A stretch of 64,000 nucleotides of DNA from Ascidiella aspersa (GCA_963924565.1 OZ004610.1:29450001-29514000); one strand, 5' to 3'; shown: positions 7,171-40,810, counted from the first letter of the stretch. Notes: generated by a model from the letters alone, not told the origin. Numbers and translations: made by a program.

Positions 7171-10100
7171 CTGAAATTAGGCAAGGTTAGAATTAGAAGT
7201 GAAACAGTATTGTAGTGTGGTAAACCAGTGCTTGGCAACCTTTTTTCACTTGCGGCACCCCAACAGAGAAAAATCTATTCGGCGGCACACTTACGTGATT
7301 TCTGACGATAGACAACAAAAAAATATCCTATATGCTACCTGGAGAAAATTGATTGATTTATGACTCAATGCGAAGTACCCTTAAAAATACGAAACACCTC
7401 CAGAAACGTCGCGGCACACCTGGTATGGTCTCGCGGCAGGCACACCAGTTGCGGAGCACTGTTGTAAACAATTCATTTTGAAATTACTTAGGTCCCAATT
7501 AATTTAATTGTAAAATGACTTATCCCCTCATTAAGTCTAGTCCCAATCCAAGTCATTGTTACAGTAAGGACAAGTCAAGTATAATGCATCTAAATAAAAT
7601 GCTACATGTTAAATTAACAAGAAAAACATAAGGTTCGCGAGCTCTATTTTACAAGGAAAAATTAGGCTAAAAAACTAACCAAAGTTTACCAAAAATTATG
7701 TAACACTTATTGATTTTACGTCAAGTATTTTGCGTTAATGACTCAAGTACAAGTCAAATTATTTGTCCCACAGCCTTAAGTTAAATCAAGAGTCATTTTG
7801 CCCAAATGACATACGTTAAGTCTGTGATTAAAGTTAATCAAGTCCAGTCTTTAACTTAGGTCATTACAACAGTGCTATGTTGTTATGCGTGTTGCAAATT
7901 GGTGTTCGGAAAACTTTTGGCGTAAATTCGTCATTTTGCTGCGATAGTCAGACAATGGCCTTCGGGTAAACGAACACCTTTGTTCTCCATGGAAAACTAA
8001 ATTATGTTTGATTCAAGCAAAACCACAAAGGTTGTAAAAGAGATCCAAAAACAACTTTTTTTTTACAACTTTATAAAGTTGTTTTTGGATCTCTTTTACA
8101 ACCTTTGTGGTTTTGCTTGAATCTTACGATATGGAGAAGAGATCAACAACTAGCAATGTTGGAGCAGGCTTAGATCCCAAAATTAACAAAAATAGTAATA
8201 ATATTATTATTATTTCATCAATTAAATTATGTTTGTTGCGTAATGTTTATGTCACTTGTAATTTGTAAAATTTAACAAATAAAAGTAGACGTATATAACG
8301 GTCAGCAATTATCGCGAGTTCGTGATGTACGCGTTAGACCCACAATGTACTGCTAAAAGTTTGTGTACAAAACTAATTCAGCTTTGTTAAGTTAGGGTAC
8401 AAATCGCTTCGTAACGTAAACACTAGCAAAGCGCAACCGACCCAAGCTGAGCTTCCTCGAGACAACTTGCTTCTAGAGTATTCCCAGGAGTCAGAACATT
8501 TTCGCCGTATTCCTTGCCGGGCGAGCTGATGCCGTTGTCACCGTGGCGCAGAATATCATCAAAGGTAGTGGCGCGACCCTCGTCTGCATCGCGCGTCACC
8601 TTGACGTCATCACCGTCAGTGACTTCATCTGACGAGCCACGTCTGGACGGGAAAGCGGACAGCTGCTTGGACAAGCCGCCCTGCCTCTGTCGCAGCAGGA
8701 GACTGTAGTGAGCCACGTTGGATCGGAATCCACCGCCGGCCGCGATCTTAACGTGAACTCGGTCGTCCAGCGAGTTCAAACTGACGGCGCCGAGTTGCTT
8801 GCGACGAGTGGCGCGCTTGCCCTCGCGGCTGGCGAGTAGCCGAGTGGCTGCGCGACTCTTGGACATAGCACTTGCGCGAAGTCTCGAGTCGATGAAGTTG
8901 AGCGACTGGGAGTTGCCCTCCTTAAGCAGGAAACAGGGATCGCCCTCCAAACAGAGGCGCTCCACGTTGATTGCTGACGTCACAGCTGTGATGTCGTCAT
9001 CGCTTGCGCCCGACGAGTCGCGAGCGTTTGGTTTCAGGCCTTGCGCAGTCGCCAGACGCAAACGCGGGTTGTTCCTGGCGCGAAAGAGGCTGCTTTGGTT
9101 TTCCTTGCGCGGCATTAGCCCGTTTTCGGCGTCCGAACCGTAGTTGATCTTCCGCAGAAGCTTCTCAGCCGATTTCGAGGCTCGCGGGAAAGTTTTCACC
9201 ACAAGCATCACGTTCTGGTCTTCGGCGTCGGGATTCTTGTCGACAGTCTGAGGCAAATTCTCGGGCGCGTGCTGTTTGATGGTTATTTTGCGCCGTAGAA
9301 GTCTGACGCCTTTCAACGGACTCAGGTATCCCGGAAGGGACTGTTTCCTGCAGGGCAGCGCCTCCGATGCGAACGCGTCCGCAAGTTCGTTCGAAACGAC
9401 AACGATTGGCGATCTGGAGCGGATCGATTGCACGACGAGCGACTGAACCGATGTCAACTTTCCGTTGTCGGACTTTGCTTCGACCCTTGGTTCAACCTTG
9501 GAATCTATGGAGGAGGACTCTTTTGATGATGACTCTTTGGAGGAAGACTCTTCTTCGTTGCTCGACGACGTGACGTCACGATTCACGTCATCATCGATCT
9601 TGAACGTTACCTGAGGCTTCTTTTGTGACGTCACTTTGAACGACGATCCCTGAACGAGCGAGTCCATCTGCTCAGCGGGCTTCCTTTGTTTCCTGTCTCT
9701 TGTCACCAGGATGCGAAATCCTCCGGATGCGTTTTTTCTGCTCCCGAAGGTCTTGGTGTGAGCACGAGAGTCGGAGGACCGGAGAAGAGCCTCCTCTGAC
9801 GTGTCCTCCAGTGTGATCACAGTCGGTTGGTTCTGGGATCCCGAGAAGACGTGGTAGGTGTTGGAGACGGAAGTTGGGAAGATTTGGAAGCGGTTGTCCT
9901 CCAGATGCGGAGTCGGGTTGGGAGCGCGAGGCTGGCTCTTGCAGGAGGAGGACAGGGAGTAGCTGGAGAGAGCGGAGGTCGCTCGCGAAAAAGACGAGGT
10001 AGGCGACTTTGCAATAAAGTCGTTCAACTGAGGTGAGTCATGTTTGTGTGGAATCTCCAACGTTGGAGTAACGAACGATACCTTGTCCTCGATCACATCA

Positions 10101-13100
10101 ACTGTCTGCAGGCTGTTTCTTTCTATCGCCAAATTTGAAGTGCTCTCGTCCTCTGATGACAAATTTTCTTCTAAGACAAAGTCTCTTCTTCCTCTTCTGA
10201 AATTCTTGAGCTCACGAGCCTCGCGATTACGAGCCTTTCTCTTGTTTCGCCTGAAGTAGAACGAAGGCGGAACTCCAGCGCCACCCACCGGGCACATTAC
10301 GTCACCAACAATGACGTCATCGTCATGACAGCCCGACGTCAGTTCTACGATTCCACCGGTGCTGATGTCGACCAGGGTGGCGGTGGGCGGTGCTGTCATA
10401 TGAAAGCCAGTCCGCTGCGAGTTGGCCGCATCACGAGATGAGTACGTGAGCTTGTGAGTTGTATCGCTCACGTTTCGCGCGTGATCATGAGCGCGCTTTC
10501 GTGAAGGCAGGTCACGAACTGAGTGAGGCTGCTGATTTTTACTGTTTTGAGCGACATTTGAGCTTTCATGTGATGCGTGAGATTTATCACGGAGCTTTTC
10601 GTCGGTGAAACGCAGCGTCGGTGAAAATTCAAGACCAATTCCGCTGTCGCTGTTGGGCGTGATGTCGGTCACATCTTCCGTAATGGTATTCTCTCGGGTA
10701 CCGTGAACGCTAAACTGCACAGGCCTGGATAAACTTAACGCCGTTCTTGCCGCTCTGGATTGGCCATATTTGCCCAAGAACGGTTCGATGAGATTCAGCT
10801 GTTTTAAAGAGGAAAGAACGTCGTCGCTTTCTTTTAACACGGGTTTTCCGAAACCCTTTCGACCGAAAACAGAATTTCGCTCGGCAAGATTTTGCCGCTT
10901 GAAAGGGTCGCGTTCGGGATACTTTCTCTTGACGACATGACCCTTTTTCGTGAAGTTGTCCCGCTTTAGGGTAAGTGGTCTCGGGGGCTGTGGTTTGGTG
11001 ACTGCCTGACCCACGCAAATGTCGACAATGTTGTTTGAGGCGGTAGGTTCGTGCAGGTTTGCCTGGGAATGGTGGACGGAGGGCAAACGGAAGATTCTAT
11101 CCATGTTGTGTCGTCTCTTCACATCGCAACAAAATATTGGTAACTTTACTTCACCAAAAACTTTAACTCTAAAGTACTGGTCAGTTACAATAGTCCCTTA
11201 AACGGAAAAAACATTCTTCCTAAACAGTGAAAAAAATCCACATAGCTCAGCATCGACATAACACGGCATGGAAAATTCGTTTAATTCGGATATACGGTTA
11301 AACTAGATCAAGTTATGACATGTCTGGTTCCATATTCTAGCCCCATTACGGTAACCTGGCAAAAATAACTCGATTGACGTAAATTATGCAGATAATATCT
11401 AGCTTGTCAAACTAAATATATGCACCTCGACAAATCAGTATATCACGCATATTCGGTAGTCACAAGTGGTTTAATTTTTCTCAAACTCTTTAGCATTGCT
11501 TATAGCTGCTTTATATCACAAGTACTCTTGTCGTTTACCGTAATAGGCTGACCAAGGGAACTTTACAAATCAATCTACGGCTACTTACGCACACAAGTGT
11601 TTATTCAAACGCAGGTGACACAAGGTACAGCCCAGCACAGTCGGAGAATATTTGCTCTTTTATAGTTCAAAGGTGTTCCCAAAAGCCTACAAATCCCCTG
11701 GCAATGGCAGATGTTGGCCGAAAAGCGTCAACTGAAAAGGGCAGTTTGCTTTGAATGTTAAAACCAATCGGTAGCCTTTATTGCTTTCAAAAACAAGAAA
11801 ACTCAAAGCCGAGTAATTTTAATTCGTTTTAAGTACGGTAGGGGTTGAATGAAGGCACAAAATCGTGGGTTAAACAGCAAAAGAGCCGTTACTTCGCGCA
11901 AGGGCTATGACACAGGCCTGAAGTGGACGTTTGCGCGGAAAACTAACAGTTTCTTCGGGCGAGAAATTCACCGTCTGCAAGACGTAGGATTTCGACCACT
12001 CGGTGGTTTATTCGAGGACCGCAAATCGCACTTCAACCCACGATAAGTTACTGCGATTCCAAGCACATCAAGGCCAAAGCTCGGCTAAAAAATATTGAGG
12101 GATTTCTCAAAGGCTTGGGCGTTAAAAGTTGTAAGTGGCGACCGGCGATCACTGGGCAACGAATAACAATATTACCTTTGCCTAGTTTACGGTTTAAAAG
12201 TATATTTTAAGCATAAATCAGCTTCACTTTTAAAGTATTTTCAAACCCGCTTTATACTTTGCTATGTAAAAAAGATGCGCGAATTTTCCCTTTAAATCGG
12301 CAAATCAAATGAAATGTCAGCTAAATAGAGATATGTAATAAGATTTATTCACAGCGTAACGCACTCTAGCTCTTAGAAAAGCGCGAAAATTAAATTTCAA
12401 CTAAATTTATTCAATTAGTTATATATATATAAACATTCAGCTAAAATAGAGATATGTATAAACATTTATCCACAGATTTTCTATACCTCGGTCGGGACAG
12501 TAAATATTATGATAGCTGCAACCAACTACTTAACGACATTTGATTGAGCAGAATCAGTACAAGTAACAACATGGCTTTGCATTTCGTCGCCGTTTCAACT
12601 AACTAGAAAATTGCACTACTAAAATCCAAAACAATTCACAAATATTTTACCTAACGTAATTTTAAAAATAACCTTGCAAAAACGTTTGTGTGAAATACGC
12701 TGATAGACTCAGACAAAACATTAAACAGAAAGTAGGGATTCTAAAGTTTCTTTTTTGAAACAGTAAGTTAACAACTGGAGGTAACTAAATTTTCTTAAAG
12801 TTAAGCCACTTTTGGCGAATTAATCTGAGAACAATTATTAAATCTTACTCAGCGAATCTAATTAAATGTCAGCTAAATTGGAGATATGTACAAACATTTA
12901 TCCTTAAATCCAAAACCATCCACAAATATTTTACCTAACGCAGTTTTAAAACTAACCTTGCTAGTTTATCACGTTCGATCAAAATACGTTGATAGACCCA
13001 GATATACCAATAAACAGCATTAACACTTTTGGACCACTTGTAGTAACTAAGAAATCCACAAACACTTAGCTGACCAAGGAAACGAACAGGAATGTTAACC

Positions 13101-34803: not shown

Positions 34804-37800
34804 ATGGCAATTTGTGGTAAACGTTATCTGGTGGCGGCCTTACTTGTCGTAGTTTGCGGCGTCGGCCTTGTACGAGCTCACAGTTGGATTGCTTGTACCG
34901 ACTACGCTGAGAAAAACGCGGCCACATGGGATCCGAATAAGTGCAGGGGCTTCCCCAGGAACGCCGCGGTGAGCGTACCGAAGACTGGAAAATTCGGCGC
35001 CGACTTGGGTAAGTATGTTACATTTAGGATTTCTAAGTATATAAACTCACTGAAATTTGTTGATTTTCTACCATATTTGGGAACAACATTTTATACTGTT
35101 GCTTTCCCCGCGTATAGTATTAATAAAGATCAGCTTTTCTGGTAAATATTTTTCTAATTCTTTGACGTTTGGACGTCATATTCATTCAGACCAACAGTTT
35201 AAACCCAGCACCAACTTTTACTTTACATTTCCTTTGAAACCCCTCAGTTAATAAAACATCACCCCCAAAAACGTTTAAATAAACGTCTTAATAAAAGCAA
35301 CCGGCAACGTTATACAGATTCTCATAGTATACGTCCACATATTTCTTATTTTAATTTTTTAACTAATATTGACTGTTTTATTTACGCACGGTCTCAGGTT
35401 ACGATCACATTCCCAGCAACACGAATGCCTGCGGTCAGAAGAAAAGGACTTACGCGTCCGACCATCCTATGGCGGTGTACTATCCAGGCCAACAAGTCGT
35501 CATCGTACATCCAATGAAGGTGAGTACGAGTTTAGAAAGCGTACAGTCTATTCAGGTGTATTCCCAATTCGTTATATGACTATTTCTTCTGATTAGGCCA
35601 ACTTTTTTCGATAATAGGCTTTTCAAAGCCACCCGTGTATTATCATGAGAGTACGGGTTCAGAAAGAGAACAGTCTATTCTGATATATCCCCAATGCGTT
35701 ATATAGGCCTATACCTATTTCTTCGGATTAGGCCACTTTATTTCGATAACAAGCGTTTCAAAGACACCCCATGTATGAATATGAGTATATGCCGCAATCG
35801 TTGGTCATTACTATTTCAGCAGGGATAGAAGTATATACCCATGCAAATTCCATGACTTAGTGAATTTTGTTGATTAGATTAACAAAATCTGTGCCGCAAC
35901 TCGCAATCATAGGGATAGAAGGTGTTTTGTGCATAAAAAAACGGTATCCTATATTATTATATCGCCACCGATAGCAAGGCGTATTGTATCAGTCGCTATC
36001 GGTACTCGTTTCAAAACTAAAAAATAGTTAAAATCAGTTCCCAAAAATTGAAAATAACTAAGGTTTCTAAAGATTAGGAAAATTGCTTTTTTTGTTCTCA
36101 CCACGATATCGGTTCAATTCCCCAACTTGATTTTGTCTGACGTAAGGGTCCTTTCGAATTTTCGGCGAACCAATACAGTAATGTTATATGTAGATTAGAT
36201 TTCACGTAACCATATGAGTCATTAGAATTTACACTGAATATTTCCGGATTTGCAGGAAGTAGAGCGGTAGCAATAAAAATGTCGAAATAACTATCGCGTC
36301 ATCGTATGACTAACTGTTGTTAATATCCTTAACCGCTAACCCCTCATGAACTCAAAATATTGAACACATACATGTATATTCAAATTGTGGAATAAATCAA
36401 TAAAGAATATATTTACATGTCAATTAGCTGTTCTATACAAGTAAGGGTTGCTCAAAACTTAAAAAAACGAAGTAGTTTTAACGCTAGCAATAGCAAAATT
36501 ATTTTTATTTAAAAATGTAATATACTTCGTGGTGCGAAATTAATGACTCAAGAGACTCGTTTACCTATTAGGTTGACAAGTGACCATACTTATAGAACGG
36601 AGCGACATAACCATGAAACGGATGTTCTTTATATAGTTGTCCATGTGCAACATTTGTGACACGGTCGCTGTAGCCTACATTTGTGCGCCTTGACCTTCAG
36701 CAGTACTAAAATAGCAAACTAAAGCCTTAGTGTTTTAACAAACTTTGTTCATTAAAGTTTTGTTAAGCTTAAAGTAAACAAAGCAAAATAGATAACAACT
36801 CTAATAAGCTTTATTAGTTTAAAGTTGCAATGTTAATAAAGTGACTTTTGTGTTTGTATTCTTTCTTTTCTTATTTGTAAAATTTGCATGGGGTTAATTT
36901 CAATAAATAAACCATTTGAAAAACTGTAATCGTTGGCCCAAACCTTTTGGCGATCTGAAAAGCATAATCGCGTATTTTTGTTCCCATAGAACCATGGAGC
37001 GGACTCTGCCTGCGGCAACATTTGGATTCCAGACCATGGGTCGTGGATCTATAGGACAGCAGGATCTCCTTCGAACAAAGATCCGACTGTTGAAGAGTTC
37101 AGGAAAAAACTCGTTGCGGATTTGGGTAAGTCGGCAGATGGAAAAAATAGTTTCAGCTCTTGCGGGTATTGGTTTATTTTAAATGTCCGACTAAGCTGTA
37201 ACTGGAAATTTTGAAAAGAGTGATTAGGCAGATAGGTGTCGTATAATACGCAAGTTCGTTTTAAGCCCTTCAAGTAATTAAGCCTATAAAATACTATTAC
37301 CTTTTAACGTTTTCGAATTAAAGCTGCACGGAGCCACATCAGTCTCTTGGATTTGCATACTGCTTGCGAGTGCCTACCTTGTAAGGCATTGCTTGCTTTA
37401 AATGCAGTTGGTTAAACGACGCACGACCAAGCCATAAAACTCTTAGTATATTCTGTTTTTTGCGCCCGTAACTATTGGTGCTTTATTTGAAAGCGACCTC
37501 AAAACGTTTGCCACTTCTATTAGACACCGACAAAAAAGTTAGAAAATGCATTAATTCGAATTAATTAGATACTGATGATGCTTATTATAGCAAAATATAT
37601 TTATCGTATTTTAACATCTAAACAAACTGATTTTCGGTTTACTATAAGTTCTGTACTTAGTTTAGTCTTTTTCATTGATGTGCAGCCACAATCGTTTGTT
37701 TTCACCATTCGGATTCAGGCAGATTCCGTTATTCGAAAAAAAATTCTGATTAAATGTGCAAAGTTAAGAAAAATAAATATACTTCAACTATAGCCTTAAG

Positions 37801-40800
37801 CTTTCAGGGACGATCGTACGTTGATGGTTAAAGTGTATATAAAGGACGATCGATCTCACAATCGGTTTATTTTACTGCAAGTTCCTCATTAAAAACGATT
37901 TTATTTCAGGCCGATCTCCTCGTGGGGCAGACTTCGGTTCGGAACACGGCCTGAGCAGTCGCTACCCCAAACCAGGTTTCCAGAATGCGCCTAAGTTTTG
38001 CGAGAACACCAACACCGCGGTCGCCACCTACAGTTTCAACGTGCCGAGGAACCTTAGGCCAGGTATAACGATTACGATTGCTAAGATACTTATTTAACGC
38101 AAGGCGTGCCGACGTTTTGTCGACAGGTTGTTTTTCATGTGGCAAACAAGGTTTATCTAAGCTTACGACAGTGATTGTTAAACTAGGAACCAGGCCCCAC
38201 ATAGGTTTTCAAAAATGTCCGAAGAACCACTACACGTCATAATTTATTTTTACTCACTGCAAAAGCATAAACAACTCACCAAAATGTTGCCAGGTCACAA
38301 TTTAAAAAATAATAGGTTATGATTAATATAAGCACAATCCAAGATCTATTTTGGCGTTGTTTGTAATGCGATTGGGCGTTTAACATTTTCCGAAATTGAT
38401 GATATTTCTTTCAGGCGTCTATACTTTTATGTGGCTGTGGTCGTTCAACTCGGCAAACAACTTGTACAGCACTTGCTTCGAGGTCCAAATTGTTAGAAAC
38501 AAGGCGGCAAGGGACCGGAGTCTGCGGGTAAGTAGATGAAAAACTCAAAGAGTATTGTTCTTTCAATTAGGTATGCAGATTCTGAAAACTCAGCCGTTTT
38601 CAAATTATTTTTCGTTGCGTTCAGCTGCATTGGAACAGCGTTTAAAAAAATTTAGCCACACACAGACTAATGCAAAATAGAAATAAAACAACATAATAAA
38701 AGTTACTAATCTACAACGAAGTTGGTCTTACTAACAAACTTTTTGTATAGGCCTATATAGTTCACTAAAGATGATTTTGATTAACCAATTTCTATTGTTC
38801 TTTGTATTCAAAAGACCGCTAATATTTGGCTAATAACGAATACGTGGTTCCAAAGGTTTTCCAATGAAATAGAGTCTATCACCGATATCATCGTTTTTCG
38901 AACTGTTTTTCTTGTACGATATTTCTTGTATGTATAATGAGATGTTGTTTTGTCCAGGCAAACGGCTTTACCGACCTAACAGAGCCGTGTGGCGGTTTGA
39001 CCTCCAACCCAGACGTGATGGGCAACAGTAATCCGGGATGCACTAGACAACCAGCTTTCAGCTACGCCGCGGTAGCTGGTGTACGGCCGTCGGAAGTACC
39101 AGAAGCAGCACCAGAGCGAGAAACCACGACCAGCGATGACACCACCTCGACCTACTGGTGGCAGACAACGAACAACCAGAACAGACAGACGAACAACCAG
39201 AACAGGCAGACCACGACACCGTATTATTGGGAACGTCAGACAACCAGAAGGGCCGCTTCGGTCACGACGCCGGCGAGACCATTCTGGTGGCAGTATACCA
39301 GCACAGACCAGGCAAGCGAACCAGAGTCATTGGCACCAGCGGCGACCACGCGCTCCCCGCATCGAAGACCACCAAAACCAACCAGGTGAAACACTAAATA
39401 TTTATAGGCTGCATTTCACAACTGTATATAGCCGCAATAAAGTCAGTCCCCAAGTTTGGTTTTGATCTTCTCGATTTTTCCCCGCTGAAAGAAGCTACAT
39501 TTGAATATTACTAAGAACTTCAGGACAATATACGCTTTAGTTGATTTAAAAAAGTTTAAAGAATCACGTCTTCTTTTAACTATCACCTTTTATGAATCAC
39601 TATATATAGGCTACCGTTTTTTCTTTTATTTTACGTCGAGCTATACAAAAGAGGCATTTATCTCACATTGATATATTTTCAATCTGTCATAAAAATGACT
39701 TGACGTTAGATAGATAATAAGAACAGTGGATTGTTGCAATAGGTCAGCATTGCTCATTACACAAATCATTGCCACGATATAGAGTTTATCTTTTAACATA
39801 AATGGAAAATCAACTCTTAAATGCCATTGGTACCGTTATAGGAAAATTCTACTTGGTATCAGTCAAAAATTACGTTATATCTAACAGTAAAGTAAAAATT
39901 TGGCATTAAAAATGCTCATTTAAAATATATTTTATAAACTTGTTTATTGTAAAATTAGGATTTCTTATAGGGTAAAGCAGTTGTTCGAAAAACATTCTAT
40001 TTGCCCCGATAAACCTCTCTAACTTAGCATATTATGTATACGCAGCATTTTCATGAGCATCGACGTGCACATGATGTCCAGCCAGTTTTCCGGCGAGATG
40101 AGGCTTCCAGTCGCCCGTGGCAACGCAATTCGTCGTTACGTTAGCGCAGACTTCACCTGTGACCTCACAAGCGCGAGCGTAAGTACATGACTACGTCATA
40201 CTTTTAGTATTTTCGCCGATTTTTTTATTGAAAACGCACCTGGTTCTTGTATACAACATTTAATGCGTATTGATCTTGGTGTGATTTCGGCAAATTGCTC
40301 AAGTAGGGCGATTATTCTATGACTTGAAATAAAATAAATAATTTGTCAAAATTTACACGAGGTCAAAGTTACAGCAGTAGCCTAAGCAGCATATGCATTT
40401 CACTATTAGACAAGTTTTAGATGAGATAAATAGCTTAGGCCTACTTGACTAGCCATAACTCCTTTGTTACATTATTTGTGCCATTGTTATTCCATATTAT
40501 TCGATTTTAAATCCGTTTTCAGTCTGACTTTATGAACCTGGGACCAATTCACTTGGTACGACACTTTATTTCATGTACCTTAACTAAAAAAATATTAACA
40601 CCAAACGTTTTTTTTAATTTTCAGTTTTGGAACGCGATGACGATTTCCGACATGGAAGAGTCGCTTCGCTCCAATCACTTCGAGCTGGTACAGCAAGGCT
40701 CCAAGGAGCTGAGAACCAACCGTATATTTTATCACGTGACCTTTTCCTCGTCGTGCGACCTCTCGCAGCACGCGCCTGTTGTGAGGCTACTTCGCGAAGA

Positions 40801-40810
40801 TTTGAACTAA
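34804..40810 (+). CDS. Secreted N-terminal-His (LPMO-like / histidine-brace) protein with Thr/Pro linker and C-terminal CBM2-like domain, 491 aa, 8 exons
   Basis: Exons 34804-35008, 35398-35519, 36990-37125, 37910-38062, 38415-38527, 38958-39385, 40046-40178, 40625-40810. All introns are GT-AG and phases are consistent; total 1476 nt. Signal peptide ends VRA|HSWIACTDY. Internal motifs: YPGQQVVIVHPMKNH, and FNVPRNLRPGVYTFMWLWSFNSANNLYSTCFEVQI. The gene model is solid; the function is inferred. Confidence 0.8.
35522..35788. repeat. ~127-bp diverged tandem duplication in intron 2 of the LPMO-like gene
   Basis: GAGTACG.GTT.AGAAAG.G.ACAGTCTATTC...GATTAGGCCA...TTCGATAA...TTTCAAAG occurs twice (35522, 35649). 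Confidence 0.85.

Follow-up and report, generated by a model that had tools for sequence, protein, structure and literature searches.

The window analysed here, 64,000 nucleotides of one strand of the Ascidiella aspersa genome (GCA_963924565.1 OZ004610.1:29450001-29514000), carries on its plus strand a gene of eight exons (34804-40810, counted from the first letter of the window), whose product we predict, with a probability of roughly 70%, to be a secreted and modular copper protein of the lytic polysaccharide monooxygenase (LPMO) type. According to a reading of the sequence checked by script, the coding part comprises 1476 nt, i.e. 491 codons and a terminal TAA. A putative signal peptide is followed by the mature chain, predicted to begin with His26 (HSWIACTDY), and the protein continues through a linker rich in Thr into a β-sandwich module at its C-terminus.

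The original prediction, made from the sequence alone, had proposed a secreted protein of LPMO-like fold holding copper in a ‘histidine brace’, distinct from the LPMO family AA15 known in animals. This core is supported by the fold predicted for an orthologue, by the conservation of two histidines and one tyrosine (His26, His111 and Tyr223), and by a remote sequence link to the fungal LPMO family AA11.

Exon structure, integrity and copies of the gene

The division of the gene into eight small exons, as first proposed, is correct: the exons follow one another in a single frame without internal stop codons, and all seven introns are of the GT-AG type. The codon positions given for the start, His26, His106, His111 and Tyr223 were likewise exact when rechecked by script. 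Exon 1 (34804-35008) opens with the ATG at 34804, encodes the putative signal peptide in 34804-34878 and then the mature N-terminus from His26 (CAC, 34879-34881), and ends in phase 1; it shares 65% identity with residues 18-60 of the Ciona intestinalis orthologue XP_004225509.2. Exon 2 (35398-35519; 62% identity to Ciona residues 63-104) ends in a strand followed by an HPMK motif, which contains His106 (CAT, 35508-35510). Exon 3 (36990-37125; aligned to Ciona residues 105-149) begins with Asn-His, the latter being His111 (CAT, 36993-36995), and also contains Asp124 of an IPD motif (37032-37034), so that His106 and His111 flank the junction between the two exons. Exon 4 (37910-38062; 72% identity to Ciona residues 151-200) encodes a loop together with two conserved motifs, YPKPGFQNAPKFC and FNVP. 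Exon 5 (38415-38527; aligned to Ciona residues 202-238) provides the final two strands of the sandwich (YTFMWLWSFN...YSTCFEV), with Asn221 at 38459-38461 and Tyr223 (TAC) at 38465-38467, the motif around this tyrosine spanning the exon 4/5 junction.

The span first given to the gene, 34804-38527, thereby holds exons 1-5, which correspond to the catalytic domain, and leaves out the three exons encoding the linker and the C-terminal module. Exon 6 (38958-39385; aligned to Ciona residues 239-348 at 34% identity) adds a short Cys-containing extension, which packs on the catalytic domain in the predicted structure, and continues into a linker rich in Thr, Gln and Asn with aromatic doublets. Exon 7 (40046-40178; 48% identity to Ciona residues 353-396) and exon 8 (40625-40810; 59% identity to Ciona residues 397-454, stop codon TAA at 40808-40810) encode the first and second halves of the C-terminal β-sandwich, which resembles a carbohydrate-binding module (CBM) of family 2. 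A small candidate exon around 40523-40555 was discarded, as it meets a stop codon when read in frame after exon 7. The donor site of exon 6 (CAG/GTGA) places an in-frame TGA (39387-39389) directly behind this exon; retention of intron 6 would give a catalytic domain with its linker, devoid of the C-terminal module.

Exon peptides were searched one by one, and the Ciona orthologue, listed as ‘uncharacterized protein LOC101242977’, stood in for the whole protein. The eight peptides are colinear with this orthologue and abut at the exon boundaries, with identities of 59-72% for the catalytic exons and 48-59% for the last two. As the alignment remains colinear across the boundary between exons 6 and 7, the splice bypassing the TGA is confirmed. 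The closest protein matches come from Clavelina and Ciona (approx. 60-75% identity, none identical), and the tunicate origin that had been thought probable was right.

Approximately 6% of one RNA run from this species was read and yielded 18 reads, all located in bins with exons 1, 4, 5, 6, 7 or 8 and all oriented with their first mate on the minus strand; among them, none of the splice junctions attained the reporting threshold. Two further runs, with no library type on record, are probably genomic DNA, since their contigs cover introns as well as exons. These display five exonic differences, of which four are synonymous and one (Arg350Thr) lies in the linker, against approximately 35 in the non-coding part of the same covered stretch. 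Taken together, the colinearity, the restriction of reads to exon bins and the mostly synonymous polymorphism indicate an intact gene that is subject to constraint and expressed at least at a low level.

Within the 308-Mb, 75-contig assembly, the family is represented by three copies, all on contig 4: the gene of the window, a paralogue at 9.0277-9.0324 Mb (plus strand) and another at 30.7362-30.7387 Mb (minus strand). Both paralogues retain the HSW..C.DY, HPMKNHGAD and YSTCF motifs, and in both of them exons 3 and 4 form one fused exon; the 9.03-Mb paralogue also has a C-terminal piece similar to exon 8. A weak match to exon 1 on contig 7 (C7:28508478-28508579) was rejected as a fourth copy, because it is a low-complexity tandem repeat encoding several times a peptide like RVHFWVAKNNYFEKNAS. 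Intron 3, which is absent from both paralogues, contains a 200-base bin (37590-37789) with summed contig depths of approximately 23 000 and 14 700 in the two further runs, compared with approximately 112 and 48 in neighbouring bins, and many contigs break there. This peak is probably owing to a very high-copy short repeat, either a miniature inverted-repeat transposable element (MITE) or a short interspersed nuclear element (SINE).

Predicted fold and active-site residues

An AlphaFold2 model was computed for the Ciona orthologue from a 67-sequence alignment. Its predicted local distance difference test (pLDDT) score exceeds 90 for residues 19-270 and is close to 90 for residues 360-458, the linker between them (276-357) being disordered. 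Over the catalytic part, the model has the topology of an LPMO, namely an immunoglobulin (Ig)-like β-sandwich with the N-terminus at the active face. Indeed, the matches listed first by Foldseek against the PDB are all LPMOs or LPMO-like proteins (AA10, AA9 and AA16), from an E-value of 2.5e-5, and a second look at the matches with VIA-align gave Z-scores of 10.3-8.1 over 136-160 aligned residues at 3.0-4.8 A.

An unbiased VIA search across 48,161 PDB chains led to the same picture, with LPMOs or LPMO-like proteins filling each of the top 23 rows (Z 10.1-6.9). The AA15 structure 5msz (Z 10.1, 147 residues, 3.4 A) and AA10 chains (Z 10.1-8.2) come first, followed by AA11 (Z 9.3-9.1), AA13 (Z 9.1), the X325 protein 6ibh (Z 8.5, 132 residues, 3.1 A), AA9 (Z 8.4-7.5), fusolin (Z 8.1), AA14 (Z 7.4) and AA16 (Z 6.9), and the first unrelated folds appear at Z-scores of 6.7 or lower. 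All but one of these 23 alignments start at residue 19 of the model, a histidine, which is paired with chain residue 1 in the entries that use mature numbering. An LPMO-type β-sandwich, set beforehand as a check of the proposal, is thus what the model of the orthologue displays, with its N-terminal histidine superposed on His1 of the solved LPMOs.

Conservation was counted on the 67-homologue alignment, in which 56 sequences include the N-terminus. The first 25 residues of the window protein have the features of a signal peptide, with Lys6 and Arg7 ahead of a 15-residue hydrophobic core (Kyte-Doolittle means over 11 residues of up to 3.1) and Val-Arg-Ala at positions -3 to -1. Cleavage before His26, as originally proposed, is consistent both with the -3/-1 rule and with the conservation of the family: the N-terminal histidine is present in 56/56 homologues, as are each of the Ser, Trp, Cys and Tyr of the HSW.xC.DY motif, and the residue ahead of it is Ala (21), Gly (19) or Ser (11), i.e. 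in 51/56 cases a residue expected at position -1 of a signal peptidase site.

Two histidines had been put forward as the second ligand of the brace, and only one of them withstands comparison with the relatives. His111, of the KNH motif, is found in all 67 homologues and lies four residues after a β-strand in the Ciona model. Conversely, the column of His106 (HPMK) contains Trp in 33, His in 22 and Tyr in 9 sequences, and this residue was therefore rejected as a brace histidine, being Trp or Tyr in most relatives. Tyr223, at the start of a strand in the model, is conserved in 61 of 64 homologues, and the family tyrosine aligns with the axial Tyr141 of the AA11 enzyme AfAA11B, in agreement with the axial role suggested for it. 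The residue two positions before falls on Glu139 of the same enzyme and is Asp in 32, Asn in 4 (among them the window gene and Ciona) and Glu in 3 sequences of the alignment. In AfAA11B, the brace is formed by His1 and His61, with Tyr141 as axial and Glu139 as second-sphere residue, and the variants E139Q, E139D and E139N show higher reduction potentials and a reduced oxidase activity (PMC12186267). Finally, Asp124 of the IPD motif is invariant (67/67).

Relatives, linker and C-terminal module

The sequence-level relatives of the protein were sought among LPMO and Pfam families. Pfam LPMO_10 (PF03067; cut-off 23 bits) matches neither exons 1-5 at E <=10 nor the orthologues, examined as sets of ten and eight at E <=1 and 0.1, and AA9 (PF03443; cut-off 27.8 bits) matches none of the window exons and leaves only a trace in one relative (13 bits, E 0.096). 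Membership of AA10/AA15 and of AA9 was accordingly rejected. Searched against the whole genome, the PF03067 profile finds exon-sized matches around its cut-off at other loci only (C6:21986965-21988590, C2:25648596-25649391 and C8:23674284-23674412); these are probably the AA15-type LPMO genes of the animal, separate from the family studied here. A position outside animal AA15, as initially argued from the N-terminal motif, is thus borne out by both results.

The only known LPMOs reached by sequence belong to AA11. When compared with all PDB sequences, the family profile matches AA11 enzymes alone (9exj at 8.5e-5, 4mah at 9.4e-5 and 7p3u at 1.5e-3), over approximately its last 70 residues, which form the last strands, the N-terminal two thirds having no match. 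The same kind of search with exons 4 and 5 alone returned nothing meaningful.

Within Pfam, DUF7492 (PF24320) is the only family matched. Exon 5 alone scores 18 bits (E 0.0017), below the 27-bit gathering cut-off, and the orthologues score 22.5-30.4 bits, some of them above it; in a relative from Lingula, the match begins at the mature N-terminus. Many relatives have a precomputed PF24320.2 match, and the nearest language-model clusters are all named ‘DUF7492 domain-containing protein’ and mostly affiliated to Ascomycota. In the Ascidiella genome itself, the scores of the DUF7492 hidden Markov model (HMM) remain below the cut-off. We accordingly place the protein in an uncharacterised family that is related to DUF7492 and lies outside the CAZy LPMO families with a solved structure. 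The suggestion that the family might be unnamed holds in that it stands apart from AA9, AA10 and AA15, and fails in that it is a divergent relative of a family already in Pfam.

A full-text literature search retrieved no paper naming DUF7492 and none on the family of the window gene. Among existing annotations, a 248-residue Ciona fragment of the same 90% cluster has been named ‘Chitin-binding type-4 domain-containing protein’ automatically in UniProt, the underlying match of which was not reproduced with the current Pfam. In the Didemnum genome paper, a tunicate-wide eggNOG group (ENOG5028N9R) is annotated as LPMO, which may stand for either this family or the AA15-type genes. AA18 figures in the 2026 literature as a further LPMO-class family.

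To delineate the family, a profile was built from the two paralogues, represented by their fused exon 3-4, with exons 3 and 4 of the window gene as separate rows, and it matched 113 proteins at E <=1e-3 among 1.84 billion cluster representatives. Tunicate members come from Ciona, Clavelina, Oikopleura and Styela, which has several genes, including four on a single contig. Other animals are represented by Branchiostoma, the brachiopod Lingula, the bryozoan Watersipora and the annelid Owenia, and protists by the oomycete Globisporangium and the amoebae Gocevia and Willaertia. On a maximum-likelihood tree of 59 catalytic domains, all named animals form one clade (support 100/99), inside which the tunicates group together (92/89). 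This topology, with an animal clade holding the tunicates, is in keeping with vertical descent within bilaterians, and less so with a recent acquisition by tunicates.

The distribution also bears on the substrate. To our knowledge, tunicates are the only animals synthesising cellulose, and bryozoans, brachiopods, annelids and amphioxus make none. As the family is nevertheless present in the latter, a role limited to the tunic is not implied, and a tunic-only function was rejected. Tunic cellulose, the target favoured at the outset together with chitin, is then one of several possible roles; suspension feeders might just as plausibly use the protein to digest the walls of algae or microbes, and a part in chitin remodelling is as plausible.

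Additional hints come from the modules associated with the catalytic domain. No Pfam family was detected in exons 6-8, a Protein Atlas search with the C-terminal module gave no usable match, and CBM_2 (PF00553) was found neither in exons 7 and 8 nor in the Ciona orthologue. However, two amphioxus relatives (Branchiostoma) pass the CBM_2 cut-off, with 27.7 and 26.4 bits versus 24, and when eight tunicate modules are combined into an HMM, this recovers the CBM_2 region of the amphioxus relatives with E-values of 5e-5 to 2e-4 (search space 1000). In the unbiased structural search, residues 360-458 of the model match cohesins (Z 6.7) and the CBM2 chains 2xbd (CBM2b, Z 6.0) and 3ndy (Z 5.5). A CBM2-like nature of the C-terminal module is hence plausible. 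Catalytic domains of the family are fused to CBM_2 in Branchiostoma, to CBM_1 in one metagenomic relative and to a GH5 cellulase domain (171 bits) in another (P0071), and these fusions point to an insoluble β-1,4-glycan, either cellulose or chitin, as the probable target.

The linker itself displays spaced clusters of aromatic residues (YWW, YYW and FWW) between 39150 and 39300, in exon 6, and the linkers of Ciona and Clavelina are Tyr-rich with different repeats; it may be more than a passive spacer. Elsewhere in the window, an uninterrupted open reading frame of 899 codons on the minus strand (8423-11122), by far the longest of the window, has no Pfam family at E <=0.01 and could be an intronless gene or the remnant of a mobile element.

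Proposed function and comparison with known families

What we infer beyond these observations concerns the cleavage site, copper binding, catalysis, substrate and tissue. Cleavage by signal peptidase after Ala25 would leave His26 at the start of the mature chain. One copper ion would then be chelated in a histidine brace by the amino group and side chain of this residue and by His111, with Tyr223 as the axial residue below the metal and Asn221 at the second-sphere position, which Glu or Gln fills in known LPMOs. The catalytic β-sandwich would be formed by exons 1-5 and the start of exon 6, and be joined by the Thr-rich linker, probably O-glycosylated, to the CBM2-like sandwich of exons 7-8, which would keep the enzyme attached to an insoluble polysaccharide. 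In its reduced state, the metal would react with H2O2 or O2 and oxidise C1 or C4 in a crystalline β-1,4-glycan (cellulose or chitin), thereby breaking the chain.

Several points weigh against this scheme. The predicted fold is that of the Ciona orthologue, which stands in for the protein of the window, and the proposed meeting of His26, His111 and Tyr223 at one copper site rests on alignment and topology. Expression was very low in the one RNA run sampled (18 reads). The C-terminal module resembles CBM2 weakly, having no Pfam match itself and with cohesins ranking slightly above the CBM2 chains. At the second-sphere position, this protein has Asn and most relatives Asp, versus the Glu or Gln of proven LPMOs. 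Lastly, a non-catalytic copper protein, X325, is also a good structural match, and the invariant Asp124 may provide an additional copper ligand, a role reportedly played by an Asp in X325 (Labourel et al. 2020).

These last points sustain the main rival, which we consider unlikely: a non-catalytic copper-binding protein of LPMO fold, comparable to X325 or Bim1, which would capture, store or redox-buffer copper at the cell surface or in the matrix. Beyond the match to LaX325 (6ibh), the invariant Asp and the Asp or Asn of the second sphere, it is consistent with the finding that a histidine brace alone does not give activity (PMC12186267). Yet, catalytic families rank above X325 in the structural search (Z of approximately 10 for AA10/AA15 and 9.3 for AA11), the only link at the sequence level is to the catalytic AA11, and the fusions to CBM2, CBM1 and GH5 in relatives fit an enzyme acting on an insoluble glycan; in addition, the C-terminus is a folded module and lacks a tail resembling a glycosylphosphatidylinositol (GPI) anchor signal.

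A metal-free structural or carbohydrate-binding protein of a matrix such as the tunic or the gut mucus, in which the two histidines and the tyrosine would serve folding or binding, would agree with the long mucin-like linker and the binding-type C-terminal sandwich, Ig-like sandwiches being common scaffolds. Without N-terminal chelation, however, it is hard to explain why a histidine stands exactly at the cleavage site in every homologue with an N-terminus, across animals, amoebae and an oomycete, and the same applies to the invariant second histidine and to the near-invariant tyrosine aligned with the axial Tyr of AA11, which makes this explanation improbable. Chance reading frames or a decaying pseudogene copy would account for the very low read support and for the lack of a junction at the reporting threshold in the single RNA run. 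Against this stand eight in-frame exons with canonical splice sites and no internal stop, their colinearity with the Ciona orthologue at 48-72% identity (34% for the low-complexity linker exon), reads confined to exon bins and exonic polymorphisms that are synonymous in four cases out of five, so that we hold a mis-modelled or decaying gene to be the least credible of these explanations, by far less probable than a copper-binding protein of the X325 kind.

A secreted copper protein of LPMO type thus remains the preferred reading of the gene. A broader proposal, for which we would put the chances slightly short of even, is that these proteins constitute a new family of catalytically active animal LPMOs, related to AA11, sister to the fungal DUF7492 and recognisable by the active-site signature HSW..C.DY / KNH / D-x-Y..C. 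Vertical inheritance would account for its presence in the bilaterians (tunicates, amphioxus, brachiopods, bryozoans and annelids), with a loss in vertebrates, and suspension feeders would have in it an endogenous means of oxidative attack on crystalline cellulose or chitin, with a possible additional role in tunic remodelling in tunicates, where it has multiplied. If so, animals would possess just two LPMO families, AA15 and this one, the latter alone having its nearest characterised relatives among fungal AA11 enzymes; it would also pair, unusually, an axial Tyr with Asp or Asn at the second sphere. As far as we know, every earlier LPMO family has added substrates, active-site arrangements and biological roles. 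The spread of the present one would point to an unrecognised oxidative step, either in the digestion of algal and microbial walls or in the building and remodelling of extracellular cellulose or chitin. The gene and its Ciona orthologue LOC101242977 offer a concrete candidate for work on tunicates.

Compared with known systems, the protein resembles several of them in different respects:

— DUF7492, which is uncharacterised and mostly found in ascomycetes, shares with it the Pfam match and the precomputed PF24320.2 matches of many relatives. As the scores lie around or below the gathering threshold, the animal proteins appear to form a divergent branch of this family.

— X325 (LaX325, 6ibh) has a similar LPMO-like sandwich starting from His1, and a histidine brace with Tyr is possible. 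It differs by a Z-score (8.5) below those of the catalytic families and by the lack of any match in the PDB profile search at E <=10, and the window protein ends in a folded CBM-like module rather than in a GPI-anchor-like tail.

— AA15 (TdAA15A, 5msz) and AA10 give the best structural scores (Z 10.1 for 5msz and 9.5-10.3 for AA10 chains), and they are likewise secreted, start with an N-terminal His and include animal members. However, their axial residue is Phe (PMC13353379), whereas it would be Tyr here, and the N-terminal motif differs.

— AA11 (AoAA11, 4mah/4mai; AfAA11A, 7p3u; AfAA11B, 9exj/9hdg), fungal and chitin-active, is, among known LPMO families, the only one matched by sequence. 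The two have in common the motif P..(I/L).PG.Y(T)..W.W.FN....Y..C followed by K(A/R)(E/R)D, as well as the axial Tyr, and their structural alignment (Z 9.1-9.4) reaches the short C-terminal extension (model residues 19-257), which holds for AA11 structures alone and thus not for AA10 or AA15. Nevertheless, the HSW.xC.DY motif and the KNH motif of the second His are specific to the family of the window gene, the residue two positions before the Tyr is Asp or Asn here versus Glu in AA11, and the members come from animals and protists rather than from fungi.

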